Origin: Paraphysomonas bandaiensis | Lineage: Eukaryota; Protista; Chrysophyceae | Assembly (NCBI GenBank): GCA_965644295.1 | Contig: CBFFRP010000618.1 | Location: 1 to 26,491, forward strand | DNA: 26,491 nt | Direction of reading: 5' to 3' | Part shown: piece after piece, positions 1 to 22,970 of the stretch | Numbering within the stretch: position 1 is the stretch's first letter | Layout of the letters: each line of letters begins with the position of its first letter | Notes under the pieces: generated by a model | Told to the model about the DNA's origin: nothing | The model's database searches: none | What the model saw: the letters and a program-made list of their open reading frames with translations, nothing else | Position numbers and translations under genes: made by a program

Positions 1-3000
1 ACTCTGGGATGAATGCTCTCGAATGGGGTGGTTATATAAATGCTGCGTGAAAATTATAAAATCTATTCGTATTACACTGGGCTGATTGCACTTTCCTATA
101 CCACAATTCATATGACACCCTTTTCAAGACAAAATTATATGTGGAGAGTTTATACATCATGACGGGTATTTCAGACTATTACAGATTATGTGTTTGAATA
201 CATTTCTCCCTAACCAATGCGATCCAACGTATATATATCATAACTGCTCATCGCTCACAACATATTAGCTAGTGATCCCTAATTCTGAAATGATCTCCGT
301 CACAGCGTTTATTACCTCCTCACGAATTCCCACACGAATAGTAGCTAAGTAGGCTTTCAACAACTCCGTCCTACGAAGCCGCTGGGACTCCTCATAGTCC
401 GCCCGACGGCTAAATACATTAGGTCTACGATTATTGTATCTACAATTAGCAGTGTGTCGGTGGGCATCGTCGCCACAGTCGTGTAGACAGTATCCACAGA
501 AACCACAGTTGCAATTCGGACAATAAAGAGCTAGACAATGATCGTAGTCCAAGCTATCTGGAGTGAACAGCCACGCACATCTCGGACATCTGAGGGACAA
601 AATACAATTCCTAATGTAGTTCCCGTGAGTTTGTATCTCTCTGTCCTTCTCAGATAAGGCAGCGAGGCGGGCCTTCTCCAGCCGCTGAGCCTCTTCGTAT
701 TCGCACCTTTCTCGCCAAGCAACAAGCTCACGCTCACTGCGTTGATACAAACGGTGAACCTCTTCTGTTAACAGTCGTACCACTTTATGGGAATCAAAGG
801 GACCCACATTACATCCGTGAGAATGGTAGGGACACATGATTCGGAACTCGCCACCGTAATCTGTTCGTTCTTCCCAAACCTCGTTAAACTCAGCGGCTCT
901 CATGTTAGGCCAAGGCTTCTGCAGCTCTGTGCTGTTAGCTACTTGCCTGAACTCCCTCAAAATATCTCCTTTGTTGCCTCGAAGGTAAAGGTCTCGTTGC
1001 CCAGATATGTCCCAAATGTGAACTAGTCGACGTCGACCTCTCTCTGACGTGGCCTCAACTTTGACATAAGCGTTAAGACAGCCTTCACAAGTAAAGTGCC
1101 GATCATCTCCTTTGCACTGTAGCCCCTGACACATATCTACCTCTTCATCACACAAACAACATACTCGCATGCGAGCTTGTTGTTCCTTCTCCTGTCTCTC
1201 CCGCTCCTGCGTTATCTCCCGCTCCTGACAAACGATTCTTTCCCGGAGGGTTTGAATATCATTGGCTAAATCTTGTATGGCGAAGAAAGACTTCTGTAGT
1301 GCATCTCGGGAGGAAAGTCGTTCCTCCGGGTTTTGACACAGAATCTCCCTAAGACGGTTCCTCAAATCATTGAGTTCTCCATCACACTCAGGAATCCTGT
1401 GCACTAGAAATTTATCCATACGGTCCCGATTACACTCGAGGCCGAAGATGTGAAGTACACACACACCAAAGGAGTACATATCGGAAGCATAAGACGGAGC
1501 ATCACCAATGAATATCTCAGGGGCCATAAAATCATGAGACCCTCTCATTTTCCCGCCCAAAGTAGACTGGTCTCGACTCAAGGAGTCGATAGAAATATCA
1601 AAATCCGTTAACATAGCGGTTCCTCTGTCCGAAATAAGGATATTGTCTGGTTTCACATCACAGTGTACCACATTATTGCCGTGCAAATGAGCCAACCCAT
1701 TCAGCACATCGTTGCATAATAGACGCTTGGACAATATGCTTAACCCATGTTCTTGTCTCTCCAGGTACAGCGCTAAGTTTCCGTTTACGTAGAAAGGCAT
1801 TTCTATATACGCTTTACCCTTCTCAAGGAATACAGCAGTGATGTCCGCTATGTACGGACTTTGACAATGGGTAGCTAATATGCGAGCTTCCCGCCAGAAG
1901 CTTTTCTGCTGGTCCTCATTGCTGCATGAAAAAGCTTTCAAAAATACGTTCCTCTTAGCAAAGCAACCCCTCATAACCATGTTTCGGCTGTTGCTCTCAA
2001 CTATTTCCAAGTCAGAGTAATCATGAATCGAACGGTCAATTATCAGTAACCCCTTAGCTATGTCAGGCAAATCTTTCGGGTCAAAACCAATCCCAGGAAG
2101 CAAGATTGGCATCTCGGGAAAATGAGTCAAAGCTATTCGAGAGAGAGCAGCTCGCTCTTTGCACAGTGCGTTACGCTTGAACTGAAGCTCTACTCTGGCA
2201 TTATTCAGATCTTCTCCGAGCTGTTGTTGTCTCGCTCTGTCACAATTATCACCCTTAAGTTCCTGTATTTTAATAGCATGCTCACACTCCGCTATATGTA
2301 TCTTAGCATTTCTAATATCGTCCAATAGGCCGGAGAAGATTTGTCCTTTGGGAGGACCATCAACCCACACCTCCATTTCCTTGAGCTGGCTTCGTATTCT
2401 GGCCCTTTGTTGCACAATTTCGGAAGCTTTATGACACCAGTATGAGGTAAACCGCGCGACTGCTACACATGCTTCCCTGGTATCTCTTCTTAAACCTGGG
2501 TAAAAACGCATTGGGTTCTGCCAGTGATCCCTCTCAACACGAAGACACTCATCCAATTCCTTCGAACAAACTTCCAGATTATGCATACTCATGCTATTTT
2601 CATCAACTAACATCTCCCCAACACATCCCAAACATTTATGAAATGCCGCAAGCGCTCTCTCTGACTCCTCAGCGGGGGAGCGCGAGCACTCACCCACCCA
2701 TTCTCCCACCTTATCTTCGAAATCCGACAGAAGCGTCATCAGCTCAGTAGACGATATATGACGGGTTTCTCCAGTGCATTCTTCAATCACCTCATTTCCT
2801 GACCATCTGCACCCATCGTAGACTTGCTTCAAAACCTCTAACCACTTTTCCACGGGAGCTGCGAGGGCTGTCCGCATTACAGATACCAGTTTACGCCGAA
2901 CACTATCGCGCTCACCCTGAAGCCCTTGTAGATATTCCATATCAACATCCTTACTTTCTACATGACTACGGATGGACTCTTGTAGGGACAAAAGCTTCCG

Positions 3001-3290
3001 CTCCAATTCTGCGAAGACACTGTCCGAACCATCTACTGACTCCACTGCCTCCATACAGGGAGCAGTTAACCACGAGTCTTTGCTTTCAAATGCCGACAAA
3101 AGGCCCATCACAGAGTCGCGTAGATCACCATCAGCAATGAAGGACACTAACTTCTCGCCACTAGAGATTATATCTGGCCTGCGCAAACTCCTCACTTCAA
3201 GAACTTTCGAATGCACAACAGAGACATAGGAAGCACATCGTCGAGCAGCCTGCTCATAACAACGATACCAATGATATCAAACATAACATA
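1..3290. repeat. Left arm of an inverted segmental duplication (partner ~14540-17828)
   Basis: Position 1 corresponds to 17828 (ACTCTGGGAT vs ATCCCAGAGT). The 264-nt 3' flank differs by about four substitutions and one short indel by eye. The two 983-aa ORFs align end to end. Homology runs to the window edge, so the arm may be longer. Confidence 0.95.
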
Positions 3291-5364
3291 TAACGGCATC
3301 GCCATAACACACATACCTCTGCAGCAGCAGAGGCTTCTTCCTGTCTCTGCCTCTCAGCCTATACAATAATACACATACAACATAATTGAAAACAAAACAT
3401 ACACAACACCTATATACTACACCAACCATACCAATACTATCAAACATAACATATAACTACATCACCATAACACACATACCTCTGCCTCTTCCCATCTCTG
3501 CCTCTCAGCCTATACAATAATACACATACAACTTAATTGAAAACAAAACATACACAACACTTATATACTACACCTACCATACCAATACTATCAAACACAA
3601 CATACAACTACATCACCATAACACACATACCTCTGCAGTAGCAGATTTCTCTTCCTGTCTCTGCCTCTCAGCCTATACAATAATACACATACAACATAAT
3701 TGAAAACGAAACATACACAACACCTATATACTACACAAACCATACCAATACTATCAAACACAACATACAACTACATCACCATAACACACATACCTCTGCC
3801 TCTTCCCATCTCTGCCTCTCAGCCTATACAATAATACACATACAACTTAATTGAAGCCAAAACATACACAACACCTATATACTACACCTACCATACCAAT
3901 ACTATCAAACACAACATACAACTATATCACGATAACACACATACCTCTGCAGCAGCAGATTCCTCTTCCTGTCTCTGCCTCTCAGCCTATACAATACACA
4001 TATGATTCCAGTAAGTTGTATCTGTAGTTCTGCGATTGCTTCGAAGGATTCATACTAACATGTGCACTTCTGATGATTTGACGCATCGCATCACTTTTGG
4101 CCAAGTCAACAGGAGTCTTTCCCTTCTGAAAATATAACAAACATAAAAAGGGTGACACAATACGTATCACTTTTCACATAATGAGTCTGTGGGGGTATAT
4201 ATACATGTGTGTGTAGAGGGGTTACTTGCTTCGTCTCGTATATGAATATCTGCTCCTGCTCTTATAAGATACTCAGCTATATGTCTGTGACCATTACATA
4301 CAGCCCAGTGAAGAGCATTCCTACCAAACTATAAAACAAAATAATAATCACATATGAATATATATATGTGTGTTGAGGGGTTACCTACATTGTCTCGTAT
4401 ATGAATATCAGCTCCTTCACTTATGAGATACCCAGCTGTATCTCTCTGACCTTCAGAGGCAGCAAAGTGAAGAGCTGTCCAACCTAACTATAAAACAATA
4501 ATAACAATCAAATACGAGCCTTATCACTCTATGAATGTATATATACGTATGTACGTATGAATATGTATGTATATATGTTACTTACATTGCTTTGTTTACT
4601 CATATCTGCTCCTTCTCTAATAAGATACTCAGCTATGTCTCTGTGACCTTCAGATACAGCCGAGTGAAGAGCTGTTCTACCACACTATAAAACAAAAATA
4701 GTAATCACATATGAGCTTTCATAATACTGTATGTACATGTATATCTATATAGGTATACGCTACGTGTGTGTGTACATGTATATCTGTTTCTTATATGTCA
4801 AGTGTATATATACGTATGTGTTACTTACTTTGCTTCGTGTATGTATGTCTGCTCCTGCACTTATAAGATACTCAACCATACCTCTCTGACCTTCAGATAC
4901 AGCAGAGTGAAGAGCTGTATTACCATCCTATAAACAGTAATAGTAATCAAATATGAGCCCTTAGAGCACTCTATGTATGTATGTATGTGTATAGAGGGGT
5001 TACTTACATCGTCTCGTATAGTTATATCTGCCCCTACTCTTACAAGGTATTCAGATATGTCTCTGTGACCTTCAGAGGCAGCCCTATGAAGAGCTGTAAC
5101 ACCATCCTAATAAACAATATCAATGATCACATATGAGCCCTTATAGTATTGTATGTATGTATATCTATTCATATAAGTATGTATATGTATGTATGTGTGT
5201 GTATGTATATCTATTCCTATGTGTATGTATGTATGTATATGTATGTGTATGTGTGTGTGGTGTACCTTATCTTTTATATTGATGTTATCACCCCTCCCAA
5301 CACACTTCTTCACTTCATTGAAGTCACCCCTCGCAGCTGCTGTAATTATATCATCCATCTTCAT
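265..5364 (-). CDS. Gene A: ankyrin-repeat / coiled-coil / protein kinase / RBR-like E3 ligase protein, 13 exons, ~1276 aa
   Basis: Hand-spliced exons, all phase 0: 5364-5266 (MKMDDIITAAARGD...IKDK); 99-nt ankyrin exons 5106-5008, 4927-4829, 4684-4586, 4487-4389, 4328-4230; cap exon 4125-4060 (KGKTPVDLAK...SAH); micro-exons 3986-3945, 3823-3794, 3672-3631, 3509-3480, 3358-3317; terminal exon 3249-265, in frame with the 983-aa ORF. Motifs VFLK, HCDVKPDN, DFD, FMAPE, SDMYSFG, CCLC...HFTCEGC...CPYHSHGC, CPRC...HCLALYCPNC...FCGYC. All introns GT-AG except one GC-AG. Confidence 0.9.
3317..3989 (-). repeat. Tandem micro-exon/intron array in gene A with a 314-bp higher-order unit
   Basis: Exons alternate 42 nt (AERQRQEExSAxAE) and 30 nt (AERQRWEEAE). 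The four intervening introns are near-identical and each exactly 121 nt. Exon start spacing is 163/151/163/151. Confidence 0.93.
4126..4229 (-). other. Non-canonical GC-AG intron of gene A
   Basis: After the 99-nt exon 4328-4230 the minus strand reads GCAAGTAACCCCTCTA, where sister introns read GTAAGTAACCCCTCTA. The next GT (4225) would shift the frame. The acceptor TTTTCAG ends at 4126. Confidence 0.7.
4230..5106 (-). repeat. Ankyrin exon-intron tandem array of gene A (5 internal repeats)
   Basis: Five 99-nt exons encoding xGxxALHxAxxxGxRxxxxYLxxxGADxxxxxx, separated by related introns. Confidence 0.93.
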
Positions 5365-6108
5365 CTTATATCTGTGAACAGAAGTGAAGCATCTATAGAG
5401 CAGCAGATCTCACCTCACTTCACTATCTATAAAAAAGGGTGTTTTTTAGCATGATGGACATATTCCACACACATAAATATCGTAGTATTTTTAACTATGG
5501 ACGATTCTAAAAAGCCCATTTTCTCAAAAATTGATACCATTGTAGAGTTTACACAACTCTCAAAAACCCTGCTTTTAATTTCTTACCTGCTTTACCTACA
5601 GTAGATCAGGGAGTTGTTGAAGATCCAAAAAACCCATTCGGACGGAAAAATGATTTTTATGCAATAGATATTTTTTATAGGTTCTGATTGTTTTCTTGAG
5701 AATGCGTAGTTTTGTCACTTTTGGAGTGTCAAAACTGCGTATTTTTTGAAGTAATCCAAAACAATAATGACATCTATGCACAGTATATACTGCTGGCTGT
5801 ATATACAGGAGTATACCTGTAAGTGTATTACCTCTGTATACAGTACTATGTATTATCTAACTGTATATTATGAAACCGTCAGTTTGATTACCATACATAT
5901 CATCGTTAACATATACATACACCCCCCCCATACATACATATATATAGAGAGAGAGAGACTTCAGATGACTGCAGTGCATTAATAACATCTTCTACTATAA
6001 TCCTATAACACAATCACTATCCCTTTTCTTCTCCATGTCTATCTAATAGATTCTTTATACTGCATTATTATTCATAACTATATATAACATATATACATAT
6101 ATAACAAC
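5365..6108. promoter_or_regulatory. Divergent intergenic region between gene A and IQUB (probable promoters)
   Basis: Head-to-head starts at 5364 (-) and 6109 (+). An A/T-tract-rich block lies at ~5430-5770. Positional inference only. Confidence 0.35.
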
Positions 6109-7802
6109 ATGACAACAGAAGAACCTGCATCAGATACACCACAAACAGATACTAATCCACAATTAACTTCACATGAAGATTCATTAATAAATAAAGATGA
6201 AGGGTTTAGTGAAGGGTTATGGCCACCTTACTGTAATCCATCATATGTGATGCCAGATGAAATAGATGTACATGTTGAAACTGTGACTGGTAATTACAGT
6301 TTTCCTGTTCAGATTATTAAAAAAACACAACGAAAATTATATTTTGGAGGGTATCGACATAAGGAGACGAGTGCAGTGTATCATCATGCAAGCACACAGA
6401 CTCCTACTGAGAAAAAGACAAATCAACGTGAAGTCAGCCATCTTAGAACCAGGGAGACTCAAACACATGATCATAAATCTGTTTCTGTGCAACCCTTGCG
6501 AGAACATGGTACTCAAATGCAAAGGATTGATTTATATCTTGATAACAAGAGGGATGTTGAGATCACTTCCAAGCCATATTTCACTGCGGAAGAGCTGTTT
6601 TACTTGAAGCGAGAGAAATGTGTTGAGATTCAGAGAGTATGGAGGGGCTATATGTCAAGGTGTCGAGCAATTAGACTGAAACAGAATATTGTTCTGGAAG
6701 AAGAGAGAGCCCTTGAAGCCAAGTGAGTAGATGATTATTGATATGCACTGTTACATCATATTGACTGAGAAGTAATATGTCCTGTAACTGCTAAGTGCTA
6801 CCTACCATCGACGTGATCTCTTCCATGCTTATCGTAATTTTTTTAATAGGGAACATAACGAGAAAACTCTCCAAGAACAAAAAATGCAAGAAATGCGTAA
6901 ACGCACTCACCCAACTACAAATGAAGACTTTGCTAGACTGTACAATGAGCTCGATGCGTGGAGGAAAGCGGAAGTTGCTAAAGTAAAGGTATGGATATGG
7001 TAACATGTTAGAGTTGTGCCGAATGACATGCGAGAGTTTACCGTTGTTATAGTGACATTGTAACATGAATTACAATAGTTATTATAGCAAAAGTTTTATA
7101 ATGCATTGATAGGCGAACACTACTCCTGGAGAGGAACGTCGTCGAGCTCTGGAGGCAATTTTGGCTGAGGAAACAGAAGCATTGCAAAATATACAACGCC
7201 TCAAGAATACTGCCCATCGGGCCACTGTTCAGGAGAAGACACAAAAGATGTTGGAACTGATGGCTCAGCCTAATAAGTGGGCGATGAGTGATGGAGACGT
7301 TGCCACCGTCCAGACACCAGCCTCAACGCGTGCAAAGGAACTGTTGGATTTGTACAATGCCTTGAACGCTCCATTAGTGGGAACCAACCAGCGATTGGAA
7401 ATTTTACTGAATGTCAAATGGACTGTGAAAGAATCGATGTCCTCTAATACTGGAGGAGGGCTATCAGTTACAATGAATTGCAATAAAGAAATTCTGGACC
7501 TTGTCGACAGAGAGGCAGATCTCCTTAACCGCGGCAGGTATGGTTGTGTGTATAGTTTGCTGTTACTCTCTGTGCGGACATATTATGTATATTGTATTTC
7601 TTATGATGAGCCTATTAACAGAGATATGACAATGTATTTGAGATATATCTAAGCTGTTTTGTTTAGACCATTCAAAAGCATGGAATCTTTGCGCAAAAGA
7701 ATTAGCAACTTGTTCCTTCAGTTTATTGAAAATCCTGCGTACAATCCTCGTGCTACAGAGTTTATTAACATACCTGTACCTCCCACTGGACAGACCACCT
7801 AA
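6109..7802 (+). CDS. IQUB: IQ and ubiquitin-like domain-containing protein (IQUB/FAP253 family, flagellar radial spoke), 4 exons, ~437 aa
   Basis: Exons 6109-6722, 6850-6988, 7113-7537 and 7667-7802 have compatible phases and GT-AG ends. Family motifs: YFGGYRHKETSAVYHHASTQT, RETQT, REHGTQM, KPYFTA, IQ motif IQRVWRGYMSR, RTHPTTNEDFARLYNELDAWR, LVDREADLLNRGR, LRKRISNLFLQFIENPAYNP. No clear ubiquitin-like domain at the N-terminus. Confidence 0.9.
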
Positions 7803-8419
7803 TCACTCATTTGTGAATGGAGGTATCAATCTGTGTAGGTGTGCCCAGGACAATGTGTATTTAATATAATCTGAATTATGAAACTGGGTGTACTAGTTAG
7901 CTGGTTTATGATTTGGACTGTGGTAGGAAAAATGACTCGTGTTCGCATTCTGTATGTGAGGGTAATTTATAATTATAGTACTTCTTTTTGGTATATTTTT
8001 ATTCGTTGGGTATATCTGAAACTGAAAAGGCGGATTGCTTAGTTCATAATACCTTGTCTGGTGAAGGTTCATCCGTTAATTAATAAACATATCGTAGTTG
8101 CAATCTCTAAGAACATGATGGTGATGCGGTATTACAGTCATCGGTTGTTGGCGTATGAGGGGTTGAAAGAACACTGTCTTCGGTTATATGACTCGCTATT
8201 ACAAATATTTGGCTCAACTAGACTGTTCGAATTTAAACTTATTACGTTCGTTAAAAAATCGAAGCAAGGACTTCGCTCTCATGACGTAAACATATCACAT
8301 ATCATACTATAAATCACATCAACGTTATAGCCATCCTTCTAAGGGCGCAACAAGAAATGAAAAAATATGACATGCTACATGAACGACCTCTGAAGAAAAG
8401 GTCGTTCACTTCGACGCCC

Positions 8420-9442
8420 TCACACGAGGCGGACTTCGCCACAGGCGACTCTCGCACCAGCATTTCCTACAAATTAAAGCCAATGAAAACACCATGCACA
8501 CAGATGTATCGGTATACATGTATCATATGTAGACAATAAACCAGCGACATACATATACAACAAAGAGCATACCAGTAGTTAGGGAAAGCTCGTGTCCCCC
8601 CTTGCCAAGATCATCAGGGTCCGCGTGCACCATAACAGATCTTCCTACCACTGTAAACTCGCCGGAACTATACGGAATGATATCAAACAATACATTGTAG
8701 ATATAAGATTAGAATTCATATACAAAAAAGAAGCATTGCATGAAGCGGGATAGAATCGCATATGTGCCACTACAATGGATACAGACACGGCAGTATTCCA
8801 ACTTTGCATTATAATATCATGAAATCAGCTCATACATTCTCACTAAATGGTCAGTGATGCTTCCTTCTGCAACTCCAGATGCATCGGCTTCAATGTTTCC
8901 AAGATCCCCCGCATGACGGACCTAAACACTGACATTAGACACAACTCACATCAATCTAATAAGATGATACCTCATCAGTTGGACCACCGTGAGTATGTCC
9001 ATGGGGGTTATAGTGAGGACCCGCAGAGGTACACCCATTTGAAAAATCAGCAAATTCATGACTAAAAATAATTTTTTAATAAATAAATAATAATAAAAAA
9101 TTGGAATTATATACATGTATATATATATATGAGTGTATACAGCATGTATATATATATATATATAAGTGTGTATGTATGCGAGTACGTATGTATATACATA
9201 CATGAGTGTATATATAAAATATGCCTTTGTGATATACATACATATACATATATGTGTGTATGAGCTTACATATGGAATCCATGTAGACCCGGAGTGAGAC
9301 CCGTCACACGATAATTAATAACACATGGACCATTCTCTCCGTCCTGTTCAAAGTGAACGATACCATGAACACCAGTGGATCCTTCACTGCCGTCACAGCT
9401 TCTTCCGTTAGGGCCTACTTCACAGATTGCTTTGATTGACAT
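8420..9442 (-). CDS. SOD1: Cu/Zn superoxide dismutase, 5 exons, 163 aa
   Basis: Not in the ORF track. Exons 9442-9270, 9061-8971, 8921-8836, 8667-8573 and 8466-8420 splice to [10 protein letters not shown]...[51 protein letters not shown]...[38 protein letters not shown]. All Cu/Zn ligands, the disulfide Cys pair and the catalytic Arg are present. No signal peptide. Confidence 0.96.
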
Positions 9443-9949
9443 GGTGATGTTAGTACAGAAGTCGAGTTATATTAGAATGAATATATGAACATGTATGCAT
9501 GTATGTATGTATGTATGTATGTATGTATGTATGTATGTATGTATGTATGTATGTATGTATGTATGTATGTATGTATGTATGTATGTATGTATGTATGTAT
9601 GTATGTATGTATGTATGCATGTATGTATGTATGTATGTATGTATGTATGTATGTATGTATGTATGTATGTATGTATGTATGTATGTATGTATGTATGTAT
9701 GTATGTATGTATGTATGTATGTATGTATGTATGTATGTATGTATGTATGTATGTATGTATGTATGTATGTATGTATGTATGTATGTATGTATGTATGTAT
9801 GTATGTACAGTATCTTGGTGTAGTGGGTTCCTGTGGTGTCCAGATTTCAATGTCAGTCATTATTATCACAAAATAAACAAGTTCATAACACTATCATTAC
9901 TATCAACTTGTGGCCTGTCAGTTTCTTGTATCATCTAAGAGAGATTGAG
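9443..9949. promoter_or_regulatory. Probable bidirectional promoter of SOD1 and gene C
   Basis: Only 507 nt separate the divergent ATGs (9442 -, 9950 +), and 317 nt of that is microsatellite. Confidence 0.4.
9491..9807. repeat. (TATG)n microsatellite, ~79 units
   Basis: Near-perfect tetranucleotide run with only two T>C interruptions (9498, 9618). Confidence 0.98.
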
Positions 9950-12900
9950 ATGTTTAAAGCTGCTCGTGAGGGTAAAATCAGAGACGTGCAGAGGTGTATT
10001 AGGAGAGGTGTGAATATTAATGAAAAGGACCAGGTAAACCATACACACACATAGAATATATGTACCATAATGATACAGTGTTCTAAGGGCTCATATGTGA
10101 TTATTATAATTGTTTATAGGATGGTTATACAGCTCTTCACTCTGCTGTATCTGAAGGTCAGAGAGGTATGGTTGAGTATCTCATAAGAGCAGGAGCAGAC
10201 ATACATACACGAAGCAAAGTAAGTAACACATACATATACATACACATATAGATAGATAGTGTATTAAGGGCTCATATGTGATTATTATAATTGTTTTATA
10301 GGATGGTTGTACAGCTCTTCACTTGGCTGTATCTGAAGGTCAGAGAGACATAGCTGAATATCTTATAAAGGCAGGAGCAGATATTCATACACGAGCCAAT
10401 GTAAGTAAAATATATAAAAATATATGTACATACACATATATATAGATAGAGTGTTCTAAGGACCCATATGTGATTATTATAATTGTTTTGTAGGATGGTA
10501 ATACAGCTCTTCTTTTGGCTGTATCTGAAGGTCAGAGAGACATAGCTGAATATCTTATAAAGGCAGGAGCATATATTCATACACGAAACAATGTGAGTAA
10601 CCCCTCTATAAACATACATACATACATATATATATACAGTGTTATGAGGGCTCACATGTGATTATATATAGGATGGTGGTGTAGCTCTTCTCTTGGCTGT
10701 ATCTAAAGGTCACAGAGATATAGCTGAGTATCTGATAAGAGCAGGAGCAGATATAACTATACGAGACAGAGTAAGTAACCCCTCTACATCTATATACATA
10801 CATAACTACAGAGATGCAGTGTTATCTTGTATAGACTACAGGGCTCATGTGATTGTTTTTATTTTGTTTTATAGGATGGTAATACAGCTCTTCACGATGC
10901 TGTCTCTACAGGTCACAGAGATATAGCTGAGTATCTTATAAAGGCAGAAGCTGATATTAATGCACGGAACAGTGTAAGTAACCCCTCTACACATACATAC
11001 ATATGATACATACATATGTACATACACACATATTATATACATATAATCATATCGTGTTATAAGGGCTCATGTTTGATTATAATATATGTTTCACAGGATG
11101 GTTGGACAGCTCTTCTCTTGGCTGTCTCTCAAGGTCACAGAGATATAGCTGAGTATTTGATAAGAGAAGGAGCAAATATTCATATTCGAGACGATGTAAG
11201 TAACCCCACTAGATACATATACATACACATATATACATACATAACTATAGAGATACAGTAGACGCATATGTGACTACTGTTATTGTGTTTTATAGGATGG
11301 TAACACAGCACTTCACAAGGCTGTCTCTGCAGGTCACAGAGATATAGCTGAGTATCTTATAAAGGCAGGAGCAGATATTAATGCGCGGAACAATGTGAGT
11401 AACCCCTCTATACACATACATACATATGAACATATATATAACAATATCGTGTTATAAGGGCTCATATTTGATTATGATATATATTTTATAGGATGGTTGG
11501 ACAGCACTTCACAAGGCTGTCTCTGCAGGTCACAGAGATATAGCTGAGTATCTTACAAGAGAAGGAGCACATATTAAGATACCAAACAATGTAAACAATT
11601 CCGCCCCTCTATACACATATACATACATTTATAGATACATACAGTAAGGACTCATATGTAATTATTATTGTGTTTTATAGGATGGTAATACAGCTCTTCA
11701 CGATGCTGTCTCTGAAGGTAAGGGAGATATAGCTGAGTATCTCATAAGAGCAGGAGCAGATATGAATAAACAAAACAATGTAAGTATCCTGTCTACACAC
11801 ATATGTATACTTATATACATATAATCAAAATGTGTTTCTAAGGCTCAAATGTTATTATTATGATTCTTTTGTAGGATGGTTGGACAGCACTTCACAAGGC
11901 TGTATCTAAAGGTCACAGAGATATAGCTGAGTATCTTATAAGAGAAGGGGCAGATATTCAAATACGAGACAATGTATGTATCACATGAAAACACACATAT
12001 GTACATATATACATATACATATAATCATATCGTGTTGTAAGGCTCAAATCTTATTATTATAATTCCTTTGTAGGATGGTTGGACAGCTCTTCTCTTGGCT
12101 ATATCTAAAAGTCACGGAGATATAGCTGAGTATCTTATAAGAGAAGGAGCAGATATGAGTAAACAAAGCAATGTAAGTATCACGTCTACACACGTATGTG
12201 TGCATACATAGATATATATATAATCATAATGTGTTTCTAAGGCTCATATGTGATCCTTATAATTGTATTATAGGATGGTTGGACAGCTCTTCTCTTGGCT
12301 GTATCTAAAGGTCACAGAGATATAGCTGAGTATCTTATAAGAGCAGGAGCTGATATTCATACACGAGACGAGGTAAGTAACCCTTTTATACATACATATA
12401 TATATATATATATATAAACATATCGTGTTAGAGGAGCTCATATGTGATTATTATAATTGTATTATAGGATGGTTGGACAGCTCTTCCCTTGGCTGTCTCT
12501 GAAGGTCACGTAGATATAGCTGAGGATCTTATAAGAGAAGGATCAGATATGAATGCACAAAACAATGTAAGTATCACATGAAAACACATATATATATAGA
12601 TATACTTATGTACATACATACATATTTACACCTACATATTTACATATAATCATATCGTGTTATAAGGGCTCATATGTGCTTACTATTATTGTATTACAGG
12701 ATGGTTGGACAGCTCTTCACTGGGCTGTCTCTCAAGGTCACAGAGATATAGCTGAGTATCTTATAAGAGAAGGAGCAGATATTCATATACGAGAAAGTGT
12801 AAGTACCCCTCTATGGCTACCTACTTATACATATATATATACATATATATATACATATAATCATATCGTGTTATAAGGGCTCATATGTGATTATAATATA

Positions 12901-15900
12901 TGTTTCATAGGATGGTTGGACAGCTCTTCTCTTGGCTGTATCTGAAGGTCACGAAGATATAGCTGAGTATCTTATAAAAGAAGGAGCAGATATTCATATA
13001 CCAAACAATGTAAGTAACCCTTCTTTAGATACATATAAACGCATACATATATACATATGATAATATGGTGTTATAAGGGCTCATATGTGATCCTTATAAT
13101 TGTATTATAGGATGGTTGGACAGCTCTTCTCTTGGCTGTATCTAAAGGTCACAGAGATATAGCTGAGTATCTTATAAGAGAAGGAGCAGATATACATACA
13201 CGAAACAATGTAAATAACCCCTCTACACATACATACGCATATATATATATATATATGTGAATGTATCGTGTTATAAGGGCTCATGTTTGATTATAATATA
13301 TGCTTCACAGGATGGTTGGACAGCTCTTCACTTGGCTGTCTCTGCAGGTCACAGAGATATAGCTGAGTATCTTATAAGAGAAGGAGCAGATATGAGTAAA
13401 CAAAGCAATGTTAGTAACCCTTCTATAGATTCATACCTACTTACATACATATATATATACATATATATTGTTATAAGAGGGTTCATATGTGATTATTATA
13501 ACTGTATTATAGGATGGTTGGACAGCTCTTCACAAGGCTGTCACTAAAGGTCACAGAGATATAGCTGCGTATCTCATAAGAGAAGGAGTAGATATTGAGA
13601 TAAGAAACAATGTAAATAACCCCGCCCCTCTACGCACATATATAGATATGCAAACATACATACATATACATGCACACACGTATAAGGGATCATTTTATAA
13701 ATTTTGATATATATATACCCCACAGACCCATTATGTGAAAAGACGATATGAACATGCGGCGACTGACTGTGCCACTTCTTTTTGTGATGTTAATAGTTTT
13801 TTTCGCAGAAGTGCAAGACTCCTGTTGACTTGGCAAATGATGAAGCGATGCGTGAGCTCATCATAAATGCACATGTTAGTATATATCCTGTACCCTTCAT
13901 CGCATTGTAGAGCTAGAAATATATCATATGTATAATTGTACAGGCAGAAAGGCAGAGACAGGAAGAGAACGCTGCTGCAGAGGTATGTGTGGCTGTGGTA
14001 TGATATGTTGCATAGTATTGCTACGGTTGGTGTGTACAGGTGTCGTGTTTTTGTTTTTGTTTTAATTGAGTGTGTGTGTATTATTGTATAGTCTGAGAGG
14101 CAGAAACAGGAAGAGGAAGCTGCTGCTGCAGAGGTATGTGTGTTACGGTGATATAGTTATATGGTATGATATGTGTGATTTCATTGGTGTTGTTAGTGTA
14201 ATATATAGATGTCCTGTTTGCTTTGGTTTTTATTGAGTTTGTTTGTATTGTATAGGCTGAGAGGCTGAAGCAGGAAGTGGAAGCTGCTGCTGCAGTGGTA
14301 TGTGTGTCATGAGTTATGTAACAGAAACATATATAAGCTTGCAGTTTATATATTATGACAACCTAACATATAGATGTTTGAAGTATACATGTGTCACACA
14401 CGAGTATATGTGTGAAGTATTCATATAGTACATATATATATGCAGTATGTATGTAACGTGTACATATAATTCGTACATTTATGTGCATGCAGTACGTATA
14501 TAATGCAGATATATATATGATGTAGTTATATATGGTATGATATTTTTGATATCATTGATGCGGTTGTTATGAGCAGGCTGCTCGACGATGTGCTTCCGAT
14601 GTCTCCGTTGTGCATTCGAAAGTTCTTGAAGTGAGGAGTTTGCGCAAGCCGGATTCAACCTCTCGTGACAAGAAGTTAATGTTCTTCATTGCTGATGATG
14701 ATCTACGCGACTCTGTAATGGGCCTTTTGTCGGCATTTGAAAGCAAAGACTCATGGTTAACAGCTCCCTGTATAGAGGCAGTGGAGTCAGTAGATGGTTC
14801 GGATAGTGTCTTCGCAGAATTGGAGCGGAAGCTTCTGTCCTTACAAGAGTCTATCCGCTGTCATGTAGAAAGTAAGGATGTTGATATGGAGTATCTACAA
14901 GGACTTCAGGGTGAGCGCGATAGTGTTCGGCGAGACCTAGTGTCTGTAATGCGGACAATCCTCGCAGCTCCCGTGGAAAAGTGGTTAGAGGTTCTGAAGC
15001 AAGTCTACGATGGGTGCAGATGGTCAGGAAATGAGGTGATTGAAGCTGTAGAATGCATTGGAGAAACCCGTCATATATCGTCTACTGAGCTGATGACGCT
15101 TCTGTCGGATTTCGAAGATAAGATGGGAGAATGGGTGGGTGAGTGCTCGCGCTCCCCCGCTGAGGAGACAGAGAGAGCACTTGCGGCATTTCATAAATGT
15201 TTGGGATGTGTTGGGGAGATGTTAGTTGATGAAAATAGCATGAGTATGCATAATCTGGAAGTTTGTTCGAAGGAATTGGATGAGTGTCTTCGTATTGAGA
15301 GGGATCACTGGCAGTACCCTATGCGTTTTTACCCAGATATAAGGCGAGATACCAGGGAAGCATGTGTAGCAGTCGCGCGGTTTACCACATACTGGTGTCA
15401 TAAAGCTTCCGAAATTGTGCAACAAAGGGCCAGAATACGTAACCAGCTCGAGGAAATGGAGGTTTGGGTTGATGGTCCTCCCAAAGGAGAAATCTTCTCG
15501 GGCCTATTGGACGATATTAGAAATGCTCAGAAGCGTATTGCGCAGTGCAAGTTTGCTATTGAAATTCAGGAACTTGAGGGTGATAAATGTGACAGAACGA
15601 GACAACAACAACTCGAGGAAGATATGAAAAATGCGAAAGTAGATCTTCAGCTCAAGCGTAACGCACTGTGCAAAGAGCGAGCTGCTCTCTCTCGAATAGC
15701 TTTGACTCATTTTCCCGAGATGCCAATCTTGTGTCCTGGGATTGGTTTTGACCCGAAAGATTTGCCTGACATAGCTAAGGGGTTACTGATAATTGACCGT
15801 TCGATTGGTGATTACTCTGATTTAGTCGAGAGCAACAGCCGAAACTTGGTTATGAGGGGTTGCTTTGCTAAGAGGAACGTATTTTTGAAAGCTTTTTCAT

Positions 15901-17561
15901 GCAGCAATGAGGACCAACAGAAAAGCTTCTGGCGGGAAGCTCGCATATTAGCTACCCATTGTCAAAGTCCGTACATAGCGGACATCACTGCTGTATTCCT
16001 TGAGAAGGGTAAAGCGTATATAGAAATGCCTTTCTACATAAATGGAAACTTAGCGCTGTACCTGGAGAGACAAAAGCATGGGTTAAGCATATTGTCCAAG
16101 CGTCTATTATGCAACGATGTGCTGAATGGGTTGGCTCATTTGCACGGCAATAATGTGGTACACTGTGATGTGAAACCAGACAATATCCTTATTTCGGATA
16201 GAGGAACCGCTATGTTAACGGATTTTGATATTTCTATCGACTCCTTGAGTCGAGACCAGTCTACTTTGGGCGGGAAAATGAGAGGGTCTCATGATTTTAT
16301 GGCTCCTGAGATATTCATTGGTAATTCTCCATCTTATGCTTCCGATATGTACTCCTTTGGTGTGTGTGTACTTCACATCTTTGGCCTCGAGTGTAATCGG
16401 GGCAGTATGGATAAATTTCTAGTGCACAAGATTCCTAAGTGTGATGGAGAACTCAATGATTTGAGGAACCGACTTAGGGAGGTTCTGTGTCAAAATCCGG
16501 AGGAACGACTTTCTTCCCGAGATGCACTACAGAAGTCTTTCTTCGCCATACAAGATTTAGCCAATGATATTCAAACCCTCCGGGAAAGAATCGTTTGTCA
16601 GGAGCGGGAGATAGCGCAGGAGCGGGAGAGACTGGAGAAGGAACAACAAGCTCGCATGCGAGTATGTTGTTTGTGTGATGAAGAGGTAGATATGTGTCAG
16701 GGGTTGCAGTGCAAAGGAGAGGCTCGGCACTTTACTTGTGAAAGCTGTCTTAACGCTTATGTCAAAGTTGAGGCCACGTCAGAGAGGGGCCGACGTCGAC
16801 TAGTTCACATTTGGGACATATCTGGGCAACGAGACCTTTACCTTCGAGGCAACAAAGGAGATATTTTGAGGGAGTTCAGGCAAGTAGCTAACAGCACAGA
16901 GTTACAGAAGCCTTGGCCTAACATGAGAGCCCCTGAGTTTAACGAGGTTTGGGAAGAACGAACAGATTACGGTGGCGAGTTCCGGATCATGTGTCCCTAC
17001 CATTCTCACGGATGTAATGTGGGTCCCTTTGATTCCCATAAAGTGGTACGACTGTTAACAGAAGAGGTTCACCGTTTATATCAACGCAGTGAGCGTGAGC
17101 TTGTTGCTTGGCGAGAAATTTGCCATTACGAAGAGGCTCAGCGGCTGGAGAAGATCCGCCTGGCTGCCTTATCTGAGAAGGACAGAGAGATACAAACTCA
17201 CGGGAACTACATTAGGAATTGTATTTTGTCCCTCAGATGTCCGAGATGTGCGTGGCTGTTCACTCCAGATAGCTTAGACTACGGCCATTGTCTAGCTCTT
17301 TATTGTCCGAATTGCAACTGTGGTTTCTGTGGATACTGCCTACACGACTGTGGCGACGATGCCCACCAACACACTGCCAATTGTAGATACAATAATCGTA
17401 GACCTAATGTATTTAGCCGTCGGGCGGACTATGAGGAGTCCCAGCGGCTTCGTAGGACGGAGTTGTTGAAAGCATACTTAGCTACTATTCGTGTGGGAAT
17501 TCGTGAGGAGGTAATAAACGCTGTGACGGAGATCATTTCAGAATTAGGGATCACTATCTAA
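9950..17561 (+). CDS. Gene C: ankyrin-repeat / coiled-coil / protein kinase / RBR-like E3 ligase protein, 24 exons, ~1679 aa (paralog of gene A)
   Basis: Exon 1 is 9950-10033 (MFKAAREGK...EKDQ; first in-frame ATG, an upstream exon is not excluded). Eighteen 99-nt exons start at 10120, 10302, 10494, 10672, 10875, 11097, 11296, 11492, 11681, 11875, 12074, 12274, 12468, 12700, 12911, 13111, 13311 and 13513. Then cap exon 13809-13874, micro-exons 13944-13982, 14092-14133, 14256-14297, and terminal exon 14577-17561. All are GT-AG, phase 0 and stop-free. Kinase ~15810-16545, RING1 16665-17015, Rcat 17238-17384. Confidence 0.92.
10120..13611 (+). repeat. Ankyrin exon-intron tandem array of gene C (18 internal repeats, ~180-230-bp period)
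   Basis: Each unit is AG|GATGGTnnnACAGCTCTT...GGTCACAGAGATATAGCTGAGTATCTTATAAGAG...|GT plus an intron with conserved ends and a TA/CA microsatellite core. Confidence 0.96.
13944..14297 (+). repeat. Three helical-linker micro-exons of gene C
   Basis: AERQRQEENAAAE (39 nt), SERQKQEEEAAAAE (42 nt), AERLKQEVEAAAAV (42 nt), each flanked by AG and GTATGTGT. Their introns are more diverged from each other than those in gene A. Confidence 0.88.
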
Positions 17562-17828
17562 TATTATGTTGTGAGCGATGAGCAGTTATGATATATATAT
17601 GTTGGATCGCATTGGTTAGGGAGAAATGTATTCAAACACATAATCTGTAATAGTCTGAAATACCCATCGTGATGTATAAACTCTCCACATATAATTTTGT
17701 CTTGAAAAGGGTGTCATATGAATTGTGTTATAGGAAAGTGCAATCAGCCCAGTGTAATACGAATAGATTTTATAATTTTCACGCAGCATTTATATAACCA
17801 CCCCATTCGAGAGCATTCATCCCAGAGT
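14540..17828. repeat. Right arm of the inverted segmental duplication (partner 1-~3290)
   Basis: Reverse-complement match to the window start, covering the acceptor of the terminal exon, the whole exon and the 3' flank. Confidence 0.95.
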
Positions 17829-18477
17829 AATTATAAATGGATCTATAACTGAAAGTCTTTATATTTAGCAATAGGCGTTATAAACCTGTACCAATATAGT
17901 GGCTAGTTGAATGGCTAGACATACTAGCTAGCTAAATGAAGATATTTATCACAGTGTGGAAAATATTATTTATTACTTACTTACATAACACTTCAGTTTT
18001 ACAGTAATAAAGTCAACGACTACACAATTCAAGCTATTCAGTCATTAGCATAAAGTTATTGTTTGTACGACACCCCACGAATATTACGTCGACGTGTCAT
18101 CCGATCATAACATTCTCAGATAAGAGCACGCATTGGTTCACTCATTCTGTTGTAGGATTTGTCACTATTACCCATTGCTGTTTTTAGTCCTTTTCTTTGA
18201 CGAAGTTACTGTAGATAATATATATAAAACAAACACTAATATACTTAATAATATAACATAAATATACATAATAATATCAACCTGCTGCTAAGTGCCTCAA
18301 GTAACTTGCCGCTAGCTTGTAGACATGCTGTCCATTATTATAGTTGATGTCGTAAAAGTATTTTTGCTGTATACCTGAGTATACCTCTTAAATTTAATTA
18401 AATATATGTGTTACATGTAGCTACTTACCTCAGAAGTAATACCTCTTAAATTGTATATGATGTTGGAGTGAACAATG

Positions 18478-21400
18478 TTAATCTGATTCATGGTCTGACA
18501 CTTCTTGTTCTTCATCCTCGAAATCACCTTCTGTTAAACGGGTTGCATTTATACGCACCTGCAGTAGCATTTTTCCTGTTGACGTAACGTCGTGCTTCTG
18601 CTCCAAAGTACGGTGCATTGAGCGCTCCTCTCGGTTCGCCAGGTAAAGATCTGATGCGTTGCGTTCGGCTACATGACCGGTCGTACCCTCCTCTAAGCGC
18701 ACAAGGTTTAATATATTCACCTGGCAGTACTAGTTTAACATCGAAACATAGAGTACACAGCACACTAGAACAACTGCCGTCACTAAATCACTACATATCC
18801 ATGCATGTACTCACTCTGTTGTACAGTTAACCGTAGCAAAATAATCGAATGTCATTATTACAACGTTGTACACTCGTTACTGCCTGCTATTAATTAAAAC
18901 TCTTCTTAAACTAATTCTTCCATATAACACACTTGCTAGCACGAACAAGTACATATGGTAACAATTGCACGTCATGGTACTCATACATCTCCGGCATCTC
19001 CGTTTGGTACAGCAGCGTACTCAATACGATTAACATGACTACGCACATTTCGTAGCTCCATGGTGATGTTATTGATATCACCAAACAATTGCTCCCACCG
19101 CCGGTTCTTCAAATTTTCGCTTCGCAGTTTCGATTTAAGCATTTCATCACTGACAACTGTCAAAATGACACCAACAATGATAATCAGCCATTCAAACCAG
19201 CGCGGTGCTGTCAAGTGAAATATGTCTTGAACCACGGGAACAAATACAACAATGAAAGTACAAGACATACTGAAAAGAATGGCCTTGATCATTGCAGTGT
19301 TACGGAAAGGATCATTGCGGATGGCCAAACTGAAAGATCTAGCAGTCAGAGGTCGCAAACACTCTGCAAAAGTAATAATAAGGAACACCATTGTCCGGGC
19401 AATCTTTAGTCCATCTTTTACACAGTCACCTGACTCCACTTCCACCCAAGTTCCACTTGACGTCAACTGATTACACTGTGTGATGAGATCGCCATCATCA
19501 TTGTACATATTGTCGATAAGCACCACACCAATATTCCACCACAAGCCCATGAAGAATGTAAGCAACATAAAAACGACAAGTACAGTGGCGTGTCCAAGAA
19601 TGCCGACAGCGATCACTCCGCTGAGAATTCTGGAATTTTTCTTTCTAGGAGGTTGTCGCATGACGTCTCCTTCTGGATCCTCAATACTGAGTGCAACGGC
19701 CGGCATTCCGTCAGTGATCAAATTGATAAACAGAATCTGCAGCGGTTCCAACGGATTCGGCATGCCGATAAGAAGAGACAATAAGATCACAAGAACTTGA
19801 GACCAGTTAGTGCCAATAAAATACATGACAAATTTGCGCAGATTGCTGTATATAGTTCGAACCCATTTCAATAGCACCAACAATCGAAGAAAATTTATCG
19901 TCAGTTAAAATCATATCAGAGGCTGCTTTGGCTACTTCCGAGCCTGCTATACCCATCGCAATACCAATATTTGCTTGCCTCAAGGCAGGGGCATCATTTA
20001 CCCCATCTCCTGTCATTCCGCATACTTTGCCTTGTCGCTGAAAAGATTTCACAATTTGAATTTTGTCCTCTGGTCGTGCCCGAGCAAAGACAAATGTGTG
20101 CCAGCGTTATTTCATCGATTTCCCGAGCACTCAAATAGTCACCATTGGGTCGGAGTACAGAGCAGTCGACGGCACACTCAGTTTCATCCATCGTAGGCCC
20201 AACTATGTTAATCATCTTAGCGATTGCTACAGCAGTTTTTAAGTAATCTCCGGTGATCATAACAGTCCGAACACCACCTTCCTTTGCCGTCAAAACAGCT
20301 TTCTTACCCCTGGTCGAGGGGGGGGTCCATCATACCTATTAGGCCTGAGAATACCATATTGGACACGAGCACATCTGAGCTTATCTTCAGTGGGGACAGA
20401 CTCGTCATCCTCATCAACAGCTATAGTCGTAGAACGACGATAGCAGGCCGCAAGAACACGTAAACCAAGATCAGATAGGCGGTCACATTCCTTGACGATA
20501 TCGCTCCGCATGTCAGCAGTGAGTTCAGTGACAACGGTGACCAGACCCATCATGCTCGTCACGAATCACGTATTTACACTTATTTAATAGGACAAGTGGG
20601 GCCCCTTTGGACATTACAACCAAGTTGTTTTGGTCATTTGCTTTGTCTGAAGATGAGTTCGGGGCAGGTATAAAATATTTGAACCGCTCTTCTTGGAGTC
20701 TATGCACTGAGGCCATCATTTTGAACTTGGAGCCAAATGGAACAACACACTCCTGAGGGTTTGACTTTCTGTACTCTCCCGTGTGGCGATACCGAATTTT
20801 TGGGAGGCTACAACCAGGGCCGCTTCGGTGGATGTACCAATAGGAACCCACTTGCCTTCATTGTAACGTAGACCGAGCTGGCATATAGCACGAGTCACCA
20901 TTGTGGCAGCCAGTGCAACAATCGACTGAGAATGAGGACCGTTTGTCACTTGGTTATCTTTTGAGTCCATCACATGGCCTTGCGTCGGATCATATCCACT
21001 CCCACTCAATGCTGTAGAGTCTCTCGTACGTCCACATCTGGGTGGCGGTCATTTTCCCAGTGTAAGGGTTCCAGTCTTATCACTGCATACAACAGAAGCA
21101 GACCCCAGAGTCTCGACAGCGGGCAAACGGCGAATCAAAACATTTCGCTCTGACACAGCGTGTGTTCCTAGTGCCAAGCACATGACAACAACAAGTGGAA
21201 GTCCCTCAGGAATCGCAGACACAGCCATACTAACCGCAAGCATCAAACTCTGGAGCCAAGGAGGATTGTCTTCATTATTCGGGTCTCTAAAGTTACGTAA
21301 AATACCGATAATTATCACCAACACAGCACCAGTAATCGCAAAGCCAGTCATAATGAGACCCAAATGATGGATTTCATCTTGTAAAGGAGTTCGCTTCGGC

Positions 21401-22438
21401 TGTACACTCGACATGAACTTCTTTATAGACGTGCAGCAGTTGGTGGCATTAACGACATACGACACAGAGAAGCTCGAAGTCTTCTTCTCAGTCTTTATGA
21501 TCATCCTCTTCTTCATCAGACTCATACTCTTCCGATTCAGAACTTCGGTTTTCTTGAATCTCACTCATTGAATCGATGTATACGAGATTGCATTTCTTGT
21601 GGTACTTTATTCTCACTGCTATCATTCTCAGGTCCTTGATTAAGTAAAGTAGCAATTGATCCCAACACTGTGTATTCATACCCGTTAAAAGGACAACACC
21701 CGTAAGTTTTCCATCCACCATACTAGTTGATCCATATACCATATTCACTGCAGTTAATTTATTTTCATCTTCTTTCAAGTGTTGTACGAGCAGATTTCTT
21801 TACTTCCGCTCGATTCCACCCGTTAAGATCATTTCATTCACTTTCACATGATGTGATTCAATTATTCGTATATCAGCAGTGAATCCAAATCACCCGTTGG
21901 CGATAAAACAATAATATCACCTGGTACAATATCACATGTTGATATCATTTCTAATTGTCCATTACGATATACATGTGAATGTGGATCAGCTAAGGATGCT
22001 AATGCTTCTAATGCATTCCCAGATGAACATTCAGTATATGTTGCTAGCAGATGCGCTGTACTTCAAAATAATAATCAAATACAGCAATACCTTCAACTAA
22101 ATTCACCAACAAGTAATTGATACAATAGCAGCAATCATTAATATAATAATCACAATATTAACAAACTGTGATAAAAAATAATAACCATAGTGGAATACGT
22201 TTAGGGTTTGGTTAACTCATTTGTACCATATAGATGTAATCTACGTATTACTTCATCTGGAAGTTAATCCATTAGATATATTAGTACTTAATGCACCAAC
22301 CACATCTTCATATGGTATATTAGAATTAGCGTATTGGTTTAATTCTTCAGATGAAATCACTTCATTACTTCGGTGATGTTTTTTACGTAATAATTCACAT
22401 GCTTTTTCTTCATCAAAAGATGCCATTTCAACACTCAT
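18478..22438 (-). CDS. Type II P-type cation-transporting ATPase (ATP4/ENA-like Na+ pump or SERCA/PMR1-like), frame broken by many indels
   Basis: Motifs occur in the correct order across nine ORF pieces: GLTS..YGTNEL, DIVPGDI, corrupted [43 protein letters not shown], corrupted [49 protein letters not shown]. First ATG at 22438. The ORF stop is at 18981, but GAT|GTATGA (18986) and CCAG|GTG (18720) allow an in-phase last exon 18720-18478. Confidence 0.85.
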
Positions 22439-22970
22439 ATAATTCAAGATAGTCTTAATTCACTTAGTGCAAAGTATGACCAATCTCAATCACTTTCCTC
22501 CCATATTTCCTAACTATGAATTGTGTATAATAAACATTCATTCTATATACACTTTCGGGAAATCTTTCATGACATATTCTTGACTCGCTAAATTTACTTT
22601 TTTTTTCTATTATTTTCTACGACAATTTTGAACGAACATCAAATTCATATATATAACACACTACATTTTTTTGTTTATGTAAAATTGAAGAATGAAATTT
22701 TACAAATCATCCCACTGTCGTAGCGTCAATCTGACAAAATTTGATAATCAAACAACAATTTTTCTACCAATCATATTCTTATAAATCGATGTAATTGGCT
22801 AAATAAAAAATAACGTCAGAAAAATCATTTTGATATGCGGAATTACCAGTTCATGGATGGATCTCGGAAGATCGCAACCCGCAAAATACATTCGTCATTG
22901 AAAAAAAATCAAACCGTCAGAGATCTGTATAGCCAATCATCAATCTGTATAAGGTGCTGATTATGAAGAA

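Follow-up and report, generated by a model that had tools for sequence, protein, structure and literature searches.

The window analysed here is a complete contig of 26,491 nucleotides (nt) (C618; CBFFRP010000618.1) from the chrysophyte Paraphysomonas bandaiensis, whose eukaryotic assembly (GCA_965644295.1) comprises 62.5 Mb in 669 contigs, and it carries two related genes, A and B, in inverted orientation. Each gene is predicted to encode a single polypeptide that joins an ankyrin (ANK) solenoid, a linker, a family-specific region, a non-RD protein kinase and an RBR-type ubiquitin ligase without IBR; this reading, together with the mechanism proposed for it below, we hold with moderate confidence. 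The two genes follow a common exon plan, their effector exons are under purifying selection, the number of ANK repeats varies among paralogs, the family is transcribed and spliced, and the kinase–ligase cassette recurs in many other organisms. The domain order proposed by an initial annotation of the sequence, which ran from ANK array and micro-exon linker through kinase to RING1 and an Rcat-like domain, was borne out by exon reading, Pfam, profile comparison and fold prediction. The finding is a variation on known RBR-type ligases and ANK-kinase multidomain proteins.

Ankyrin exon cassettes and the gene family

Genes A and B are built on the same plan, with an ANK cap exon, internal ANK exons of 99 nt, a closing cap, micro-exons and one long terminal exon (Table 1). 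The first exon of both genes opens with ATG and codes for a capping ANK-like unit, and the closing cap exon of 66 nt encodes a peptide of the K-x-K-T-P-V-D-L-A type. The micro-exon peptides are rich in E, R, Q and A (AERQRQEE..AAAE type) and form a linker of 62 amino acids (aa) in gene A and 41 aa in gene B; in gene A, Tandem Repeats Finder reports periods of 151 and 314 at 3260-3996, over the micro-exon linker (3317..3986). This E/R/Q-rich linker, the length of which varies by whole micro-exons, is probably helical. The terminal exons contain two open reading frames (ORFs) of 983 aa, one on the minus strand (265-3216) and the other, inverted with respect to it, on the plus strand (14610-17561), with 917 of 984 residues (93%) the same in both; 11 further codons precede each of them up to an AG acceptor, so that the terminal exons begin at this acceptor.

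The internal ANK exons, identified by a motif scan and by a hidden Markov model (HMM) built from the exons, number exactly 18 in gene B and 5 in gene A, as had been counted in the initial annotation, and each is exactly 99 nt long and in phase 0. A pyrimidine-rich tract and AG precede each exon and GT follows it, with the last ANK exon of gene A (4230-4328) as the sole exception; its donor is GC (GCAAGT at 4229-4228), so that the intron is of the rare GC-AG type or else the splice site has been weakened. Single exons match the entire PF00023 unit (positions 1-33/33) with E values from 4e-9 to 8e-12, and the arrays are accordingly read as tandem 33-residue repeats of predicted helix-turn-helix form that fit the Ank profile. 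Tandem Repeats Finder picks up the arrays independently, with periods of 192-200 in gene B.

Within gene B, mean pairwise identity between the ANK units is 83% for the exons and 57% for the 60 nt of upstream intron (ungapped). Compared with one another, these repeats have an overall ratio of nonsynonymous to synonymous substitution rates (dN/dS) of 1.09, and one of 0.42 at the framework positions; the ten positions that vary most (3, 7, 8, 12, 15, 29-33) give 3.1, a value that is no test of selection because sites picked post hoc inflate dN/dS. Positions 3, 12, 31 and 33 are, as we take it, four of the six binding positions randomised in the design of designed ankyrin repeat proteins (DARPins). 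Variation at the binding face is expected of any functional ANK protein and is by itself no sign of an arms race.

Close copies of the effector module, with 87-100% identical protein, were found in genes A and B and on contigs C453, C138, C461 and C263. The C263 copy has 11 internal ANK exons, the C138 copy 7 and the C461 copy about 1, the last with a broken frame and an ORF of just 383 aa. One repeat per exon, symmetric phase and counts of 5, 18, 11, 7 and ~1 among paralogs together make up an exon-cassette organisation in which repeat number is not fixed across loci. The copy on C453 was rejected as an independent paralog, being 95.5% identical to window positions 14936-26491 over 11.7 kb; the gene B side is present there as a haplotig or as a segmental copy of very recent origin. 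This 21-kb contig (G000:C453:8657-21279; L019, L001, L010) ends within the terminal exon and looks like a divergent haplotig, which suggests either a highly heterozygous genome or an assembly that retains both haplotypes.

The family thus counted consists of five close loci and one old divergent paralog, and it is small and recently expanded. The initial annotation had presented A and B as an inverted paralog pair; the inverted orientation stands, although the pair is not isolated, given at least three more close loci and the divergent paralog. The latter, on C409 (L007, G000:C409:81181-84987), shares 28% identity; its kinase reads HCG where the catalytic HCD would stand, its Rcat Cys is changed to Ser, and it is still expressed. 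Neither of its enzymes is predicted to be active, and it may serve as a regulator or a decoy. A profile search located further genes that bear the module but are of other types on C207, C236, C447 and C377. In the gene on C447 (L008, G000:C447:14965-18261), RING1 and a more canonical Rcat (GCFALTC..NCGASFCAWC) follow a long Cys-rich region without a Pfam match; an intron seems to split RING1 from Rcat, and the upstream open frame extends over 1626 aa.

Between A and B, the terminal exon has a dS of 0.09 and a dN/dS of 0.35, and this low ratio indicates that both copies are under purifying selection. By region, dN/dS is 0.20 in the kinase, 0.28 in the ligase module and 0.45 in the N-terminal region, in agreement with the earlier description of the effector ends as near-identical.

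The one-repeat-per-exon precedent that had been invoked from the brown alga Ectocarpus is real: its LRR-ROCO and NB-ARC-TPR candidate receptors carry one repeat per exon, in numbers that vary among paralogs (PMC3341825, PMC11378527). The likeness lies in the exon-per-repeat organisation, the variation in repeat number and the stramenopile lineage. The Ectocarpus proteins differ in having LRR or TPR repeats rather than ANK, and a ROC-COR GTPase or NB-ARC rather than a kinase and an RBR-like ligase; there is no homology between them, and the family described here is much smaller.

Transcripts support the predicted splicing. In polyA metatranscriptomes (runs X1 and X4), contigs span the terminal exon, and several predicted introns have zero depth. 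They end at 14575/6 with micro-exon-like sequence attached, and these loose ends indicate that the predicted acceptor of the terminal exon is in use. RNA-type contigs also show joints near 13875 to 14093 in the gene B linker, as well as a GT..AG joint from 13209 to 13513. There an ANK exon is connected at its end with the beginning of a later one and a whole cassette is left out, which could be due to exon skipping in frame, to a paralog or to a strain that has fewer repeats. All these contigs are short, and many of them are 5-10% divergent from the window and derive from paralogs or from other strains; what they establish is that splicing in the family follows the prediction. ANK exons are joined to the effector part in P0219, a complete MMETSP ORF of 1137 aa that matches the C409 paralog, in the parts checked, at its ORF and at one upstream ANK exon, and that holds four ANK repeats, a helical region, a kinase, RING1 and an Rcat-like domain in one frame. 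Transcripts that fail to join the ANK exons to the terminal exon, named in the initial annotation as a refutation, are thus not what was seen in the divergent paralog.

The atypical kinase, the RING1–Rcat module and their spread

The region that precedes the kinase is matched by phmmer only in P0069 and P0219, with P0112 added for its last part, and its last ~60 aa align by BLASTP to P0222. The ESM Atlas gave no usable match for it, and its best profile match in PDB (E 0.079) was not significant; as judged by these comparisons, the region appears to be common to the family's own members only.

The kinase is recognised by Pfam (Pkinase, aa 424-645, E 5e-30 to 1e-29, with the match beginning at profile position 27) and by PDB kinases at E ~3e-17. 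In both genes it retains the residues of an active kinase, namely the beta3 Lys (VFLKAF), the alphaC Glu (WREARIL), HCDVKPDN with its catalytic Asp and Asn, the metal-binding Asp and MAPE. It is non-RD, DFG is changed to DFD, and ESNSRN stands in place of the Gly-rich loop GxGxxG. The kinases that precede the same ligase module elsewhere carry S-R-N/H-R-V-Y for GxGxxG, a non-RD H-[ACSG]-D and DFD, and they also keep Lys, Glu, Asp, Asn and APE; a canonical Gly loop is present in only 4 of 29 module-linked kinases. This atypical signature, shared across organisms, indicates that the kinase-RING1-Rcat cassette is old and conserved. As the replacement of the Gly loop is a conserved motif itself, it speaks for function and not for decay.

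The C-terminal module comprises the last 313 aa of the terminal-exon protein. In the window protein Pfam detects the kinase only, and neither RING nor IBR reaches threshold. The consensus of 140 relatives begins with C-x2-C ... C ... H-F-x-C-x2-C ... C-P-x5-C, followed by a long Cys-free stretch, and continues with CPRC-x2-AF-x-DF-x-GCFALTC-x2-C-x-CGFCAWCL-x-DCG-x-DAH-x-HV-x2-C and conserved helices; the candidate Rcat Cys is at least 90% conserved among them. In most relatives, module positions 10-57 are joined directly to 121-312, which shows that the window clade has an insert of ~60 aa in the first zinc domain.

When the 140-relative profile was compared with PDB sequences, it matched parkin at E 8.6e-5, with RING1 aligned to RING1 and the CPRC domain aligned separately to RING2/Rcat; it also matched the Rcat of CUL9, ARIH1 and HOIP, with the Cys of G-C-F-A-L in register with the catalytic Cys. 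AlphaFold2 modelled the module from the 140-row alignment with a predicted local distance difference test score (pLDDT) of 95.8 and a predicted template modelling score (pTM) of 0.76; an earlier run on 7 sequences (pLDDT 56.8, Rcat below 50) was discarded. Foldseek places RBR ligases at all of ranks 1-47 (parkin, HHARI, HOIP, RNF216, ARIH2, HOIL-1L, RNF144A; best E 2.4e-3). In VIA-align, model residues 9-168 match the RING1 of parkin at Z 6.9 (root-mean-square deviation 2.7, 97 aligned) and that of RNF144A at Z 6.8, and residues 183-307 match the Rcat and helix of RNF216 at Z 5.8.

On profile and model, the first zinc domain is predicted to adopt the cross-brace, C3HC4-type fold of RING1 and to dock E2, and the second is a putative Rcat with a Cys at the catalytic position that is a candidate non-ligand. 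No IBR (BRcat) was recognised in the model, in which module residues 139-202 are helical with one Cys, and the relatives are arranged alike; the model places helices at 148-182 and 186-202 between RING1 and Rcat with pLDDT above 90, and weak Pfam IBR_1 matches occur in 66 of the 140 relatives. Since RING1 and Rcat were recognised and IBR was not, the module is called RBR-like and not a full RBR. The earlier designation as an RBR-like E3 therefore holds, with RING1 and Rcat and with no canonical IBR.

The module and its paralogs were used as a profile against 1.84 billion protein-cluster representatives, which yielded 2569 matches at E <=1e-3 and 1587 at <=1e-10. A protein search by indexed words, with the entire terminal exon as query, had returned generic kinase matches only, at E 2e-12 or weaker; this blank is attributed to the word filter, given that the exhaustive search of representatives found thousands of module relatives. 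The best word-indexed match, the kinase-TIR protein P0001, was ruled out by a check as a protein of this genome. The top 150 module matches include a kinase in 29 and a UPF1-like helicase in 11, and the 44 top matches of at least 600 aa include a kinase in 21 and a UPF1-like helicase in 11; elsewhere the fusion partners of the module include UPF1/ZNFX1-like helicases and an N-terminal MATH domain. Two proteins of other organisms (P0106 and P0162) have an N-terminal ubiquitin-like domain, followed by the atypical kinase and RING1-Rcat.

Representatives of the module occur in haptophytes, diatoms, dinoflagellates, oomycetes, choanoflagellates and rotifers, its Atlas neighbours are most frequent in haptophytes, rotifers and diatoms, and transcripts of the cassette were found in the dinoflagellate Biecheleria cincta and the choanoflagellate Acanthoeca spectabilis. 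The whole domain order is present at 28-39% identity in P0222, a 1112-aa intronless ORF on a 46-kb metagenomic contig, which indicates that the one-repeat-per-exon structure is a feature of this lineage and that the architecture itself is older. As to the suggestion that this architecture is undescribed, no description of it was found in Pfam or in the papers searched; its kinase-RING1-Rcat part is widespread in protists. In the sources searched, no Pfam family or paper was found on an IBR-less RING1-Rcat module or on its kinase fusion, which is no proof of novelty.

Compared with the RBR ligases parkin, ARIH1/HHARI, RNF216, HOIP and CUL9, the module has the same succession of RING1 and an Rcat-type domain, a Cys aligned to the catalytic Cys, fold matches almost exclusively to RBRs, and a helical tail after Rcat that resembles that of RNF216. 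Unlike them, it has a hairpin in place of IBR/BRcat, no His at +2, extra conserved Cys/His (DCGxDAHxH) and a kinase fusion, and it is sub-threshold in Pfam. Another known group is the RBR subfamily with a helicase (Plant I/Helicase of Marin 2010; PMC2904391). In its Pythium oligandrum example TMW58426.1, the C-terminal Rcat and tail are of the same sequence type (profile E 2e-33) and stand after a Pfam-detected RING and IBR, which links the window domain with the place that Rcat occupies in a canonical RBR. TMW58426.1 differs in its DEAH helicase, detectable RING and IBR and two tandem Rcat-type units, and in the lack of a kinase and ANK.

PINK1 and parkin likewise pair a kinase with an RBR-type ligase, and some cassette relatives (P0106 and P0162) have an N-terminal Ubl as parkin does; this is an analogy only, as both activities reside in one chain here and the kinase is of another, atypical type. 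Among other multidomain proteins, we take ANKIB1 to combine ANK with a full RBR and no kinase, plant KEG to run RING-kinase-ANK-HERC2-like repeats with a plain RING and in an order other than that of the window genes, and RIPK4 to combine a kinase and ANK with no ligase. None of these three was recovered by protein and PDB searches as a relative beyond generic domain similarity.

Proposed mechanism and alternative explanations

In the mechanism proposed for this single chain, the ANK array would bind a protein partner, and cassette duplication or loss and substitutions at the binding face would alter both partner specificity and reach. RING1 would recruit E2~ubiquitin, and the candidate Rcat Cys would accept the ubiquitin and transfer it either to the target bound by the ANK array or to its own chain. 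The kinase, being fused to the ligase, might turn it on in cis or mark the target, in a PINK1/parkin-style logic contained in one chain. The partner may be foreign, as in immunity, or cellular, as in regulation.

Several observations weigh against this reading. The lack of a Gly-rich loop together with DFD may mean that the kinase is weak, unusual or inactive. Canonical Rcat domains have a His two residues after the catalytic Cys, which the module lacks (CLALYC here; CFALTC in the family consensus), and the model of the module contains no IBR. The structural matches are moderate (Foldseek E >=2.4e-3, Z <7), as would be expected for small zinc domains. No full-length transcript of gene A or B was found among the short RNA contigs. 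Moreover, the expression of the C409 paralog without catalytic Asp and Rcat Cys implies that some members work without catalysis.

A possible, if fairly unlikely, alternative is that the proteins are ordinary regulators, that is, substrate-recruiting kinase/E3 scaffolds with a housekeeping or stress function, in which the ANK number drifts by unequal crossing-over without adaptive meaning. The exon-intron units form tandem repeats of 75-80% identity, which invite unequal recombination, and a between-repeat dN/dS near 1 is compatible with relaxed constraint. The broken frame and single recognisable ANK exon of the C461 copy suggest birth-and-death turnover, while the ancient and widespread kinase-ligase cassette resembles a core signalling unit. 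Drift alone is harder to reconcile with all 23 internal ANK exons of A and B, which keep open frames, a length of 99 nt and usable splice sites, and with the framework dN/dS of 0.42, since unused arrays of this length would decay fast.

We consider it unlikely, though still a serious proposal, that the proteins are intracellular immune or surveillance receptors whose ANK arrays recognise pathogen ligands and signal through kinase and ligase or towards cell death. ANK number varies among recent paralogs with conserved effectors, and the arrangement in cassettes of one repeat per exon is reminiscent of the Ectocarpus candidate receptors (PMC3341825). The between-repeat dN/dS of ~1.09, with changes clustered at binding-face positions, would fit diversification, but binding-face variation is ordinary for ANK proteins and the post hoc choice of sites inflates dN/dS. 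The kinases are non-RD, and Dardick and Ronald in 2006 reportedly described this trait as enriched among pattern-recognition receptor kinases. The fusion of the ligase module elsewhere to UPF1/ZNFX1-like helicases and to a MATH domain, and the presence in the genome of at least 11 loci above the TIR_2 cut-off, also point this way. Against it, there are only about five close loci and no large polymorphic repertoire is apparent, the neighbouring genes (an IQUB-like gene and a P-type ATPase) are unrelated to defence, and P0222 keeps the architecture as a plain intronless ORF, as expected of a conserved cellular function.

More speculative, and somewhat more doubtful again, is the broader proposal that the module represents an undescribed IBR-less branch of the RBR ligases, which co-evolved with its own kinase as a protist effector cassette and was coupled here to ANK as a single-chain immune or surveillance receptor. 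Least probable is a silent scaffold or decoy in which a pseudokinase is joined to a zinc module used for contacts only, such as E2 or ubiquitin binding without transfer: the degenerate Gly-rich loop, the change of DFG to DFD, the absence of a His after the candidate catalytic Cys and an expressed divergent paralog with HCG and a Cys-to-Ser change would agree with it, but Lys, Glu, catalytic Asp, Asn, metal-binding Asp and APE are kept in A, B and distant taxa, the Rcat Cys is at least 90% conserved and the Gly-loop replacement is the conserved S-R-N/H-R-V-Y motif.

If the biochemistry of the single-chain kinase and RBR-type ligase holds, a widespread type of ubiquitin ligase would exist without the IBR, the domain that gives the RBR its name, and it stands unannotated by Pfam. 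In many relatives this module is hard-wired to a distinctive kinase, and it would then also offer a natural single-chain system for the coupling of phosphorylation and RBR-type ubiquitin transfer, which in PINK1/parkin needs study in trans. The ANK arrays, for their part, lend themselves to the study of how repeat number evolves through exon duplication in a marine protist, and they are no more than a candidate for a stramenopile recognition system of a non-NLR, non-LRR kind.

Feature coordinates and surroundings

Table 1. Coordinates of genes A and B and of their predicted domains in the window.
Feature	Gene	Position	Strand	Basis or remark
Whole coding span	A	265..5364	-	predicted protein ~1276 aa
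N-cap ANK exon	A	5266-5364	-	sequence reading
ANK cassette array	A	4230..5106	-	5 internal exons
Internal ANK exons (5)	A	5008-5106, 4829-4927, 4586-4684, 4389-4487, 4230-4328	-	exon finder, ANK HMM
C-cap exon	A	4060-4125	-	sequence reading
Micro-exons (5; 42, 30, 42, 30, 42 nt)	A	3945-3986, 3794-3823, 3631-3672, 3480-3509, 3317-3358	-	sequence reading
Terminal exon (2985 nt)	A	265-3249	-	
Pre-kinase region	A	1999-3249	-	~400-420 aa, taken as helical
Protein kinase domain	A	~1267-1998	-	
RING1 with ~60-aa clade-specific insert	A	808-1170	-	
Rcat-like zinc domain	A	442-588	-	
Whole coding span	B	9950..17561	+	predicted protein ~1679 aa
N-cap exon	B	9950-10033	+	sequence reading
ANK cassette array	B	10120..13611	+	18 exons, one repeat each, period ~195-200 nt
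Internal ANK exons (18)	B	within 10120-13611	+	motif scan, HMM
C-cap exon	B	13809-13874	+	sequence reading
Micro-exons (3; 39, 42, 42 nt)	B	13944-13982, 14092-14133, 14256-14297	+	sequence reading
Terminal exon (2985 nt)	B	14577-17561	+	
Pre-kinase region	B	14577..15827	+	~400-420 aa, taken as helical
Protein kinase domain	B	15828..16559	+	
RING1 with ~60-aa clade-specific insert	B	16656..17018	+	
Long helical hairpin at the place of IBR (BRcat)	B	17034..17225	+	one Cys, no Cys/His cluster
Rcat-like zinc domain	B	17238..17384	+	
Candidate catalytic Cys codon of Rcat	B	17289-17291	+	
Helices after Rcat	B	17385-17558	+	

Genes A and B are divergent (head to head), and the gene between them (6109-7652, plus strand), which is unrelated to either, codes for an IQ motif together with an IQUB-like domain (E 5e-29). 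Downstream of gene B, at 18981-21564 on the minus strand, lies a multi-exon P-type cation ATPase gene with pieces of E1-E2_ATPase, Cation_ATPase and Cation_ATPase_C. Elsewhere in the genome, the TIR_2 domains stand in large open frames, for example at C280:32850-33173 and C111:17249-17572; in the two TIR_2 ORF pieces that were scanned, only TIR was found and no ANK or kinase. Just 5' of the start codon of gene B, a pure (ATGT)n microsatellite of ~79 copies occupies 9491-9807 and is the source of long spurious ORFs in every frame.

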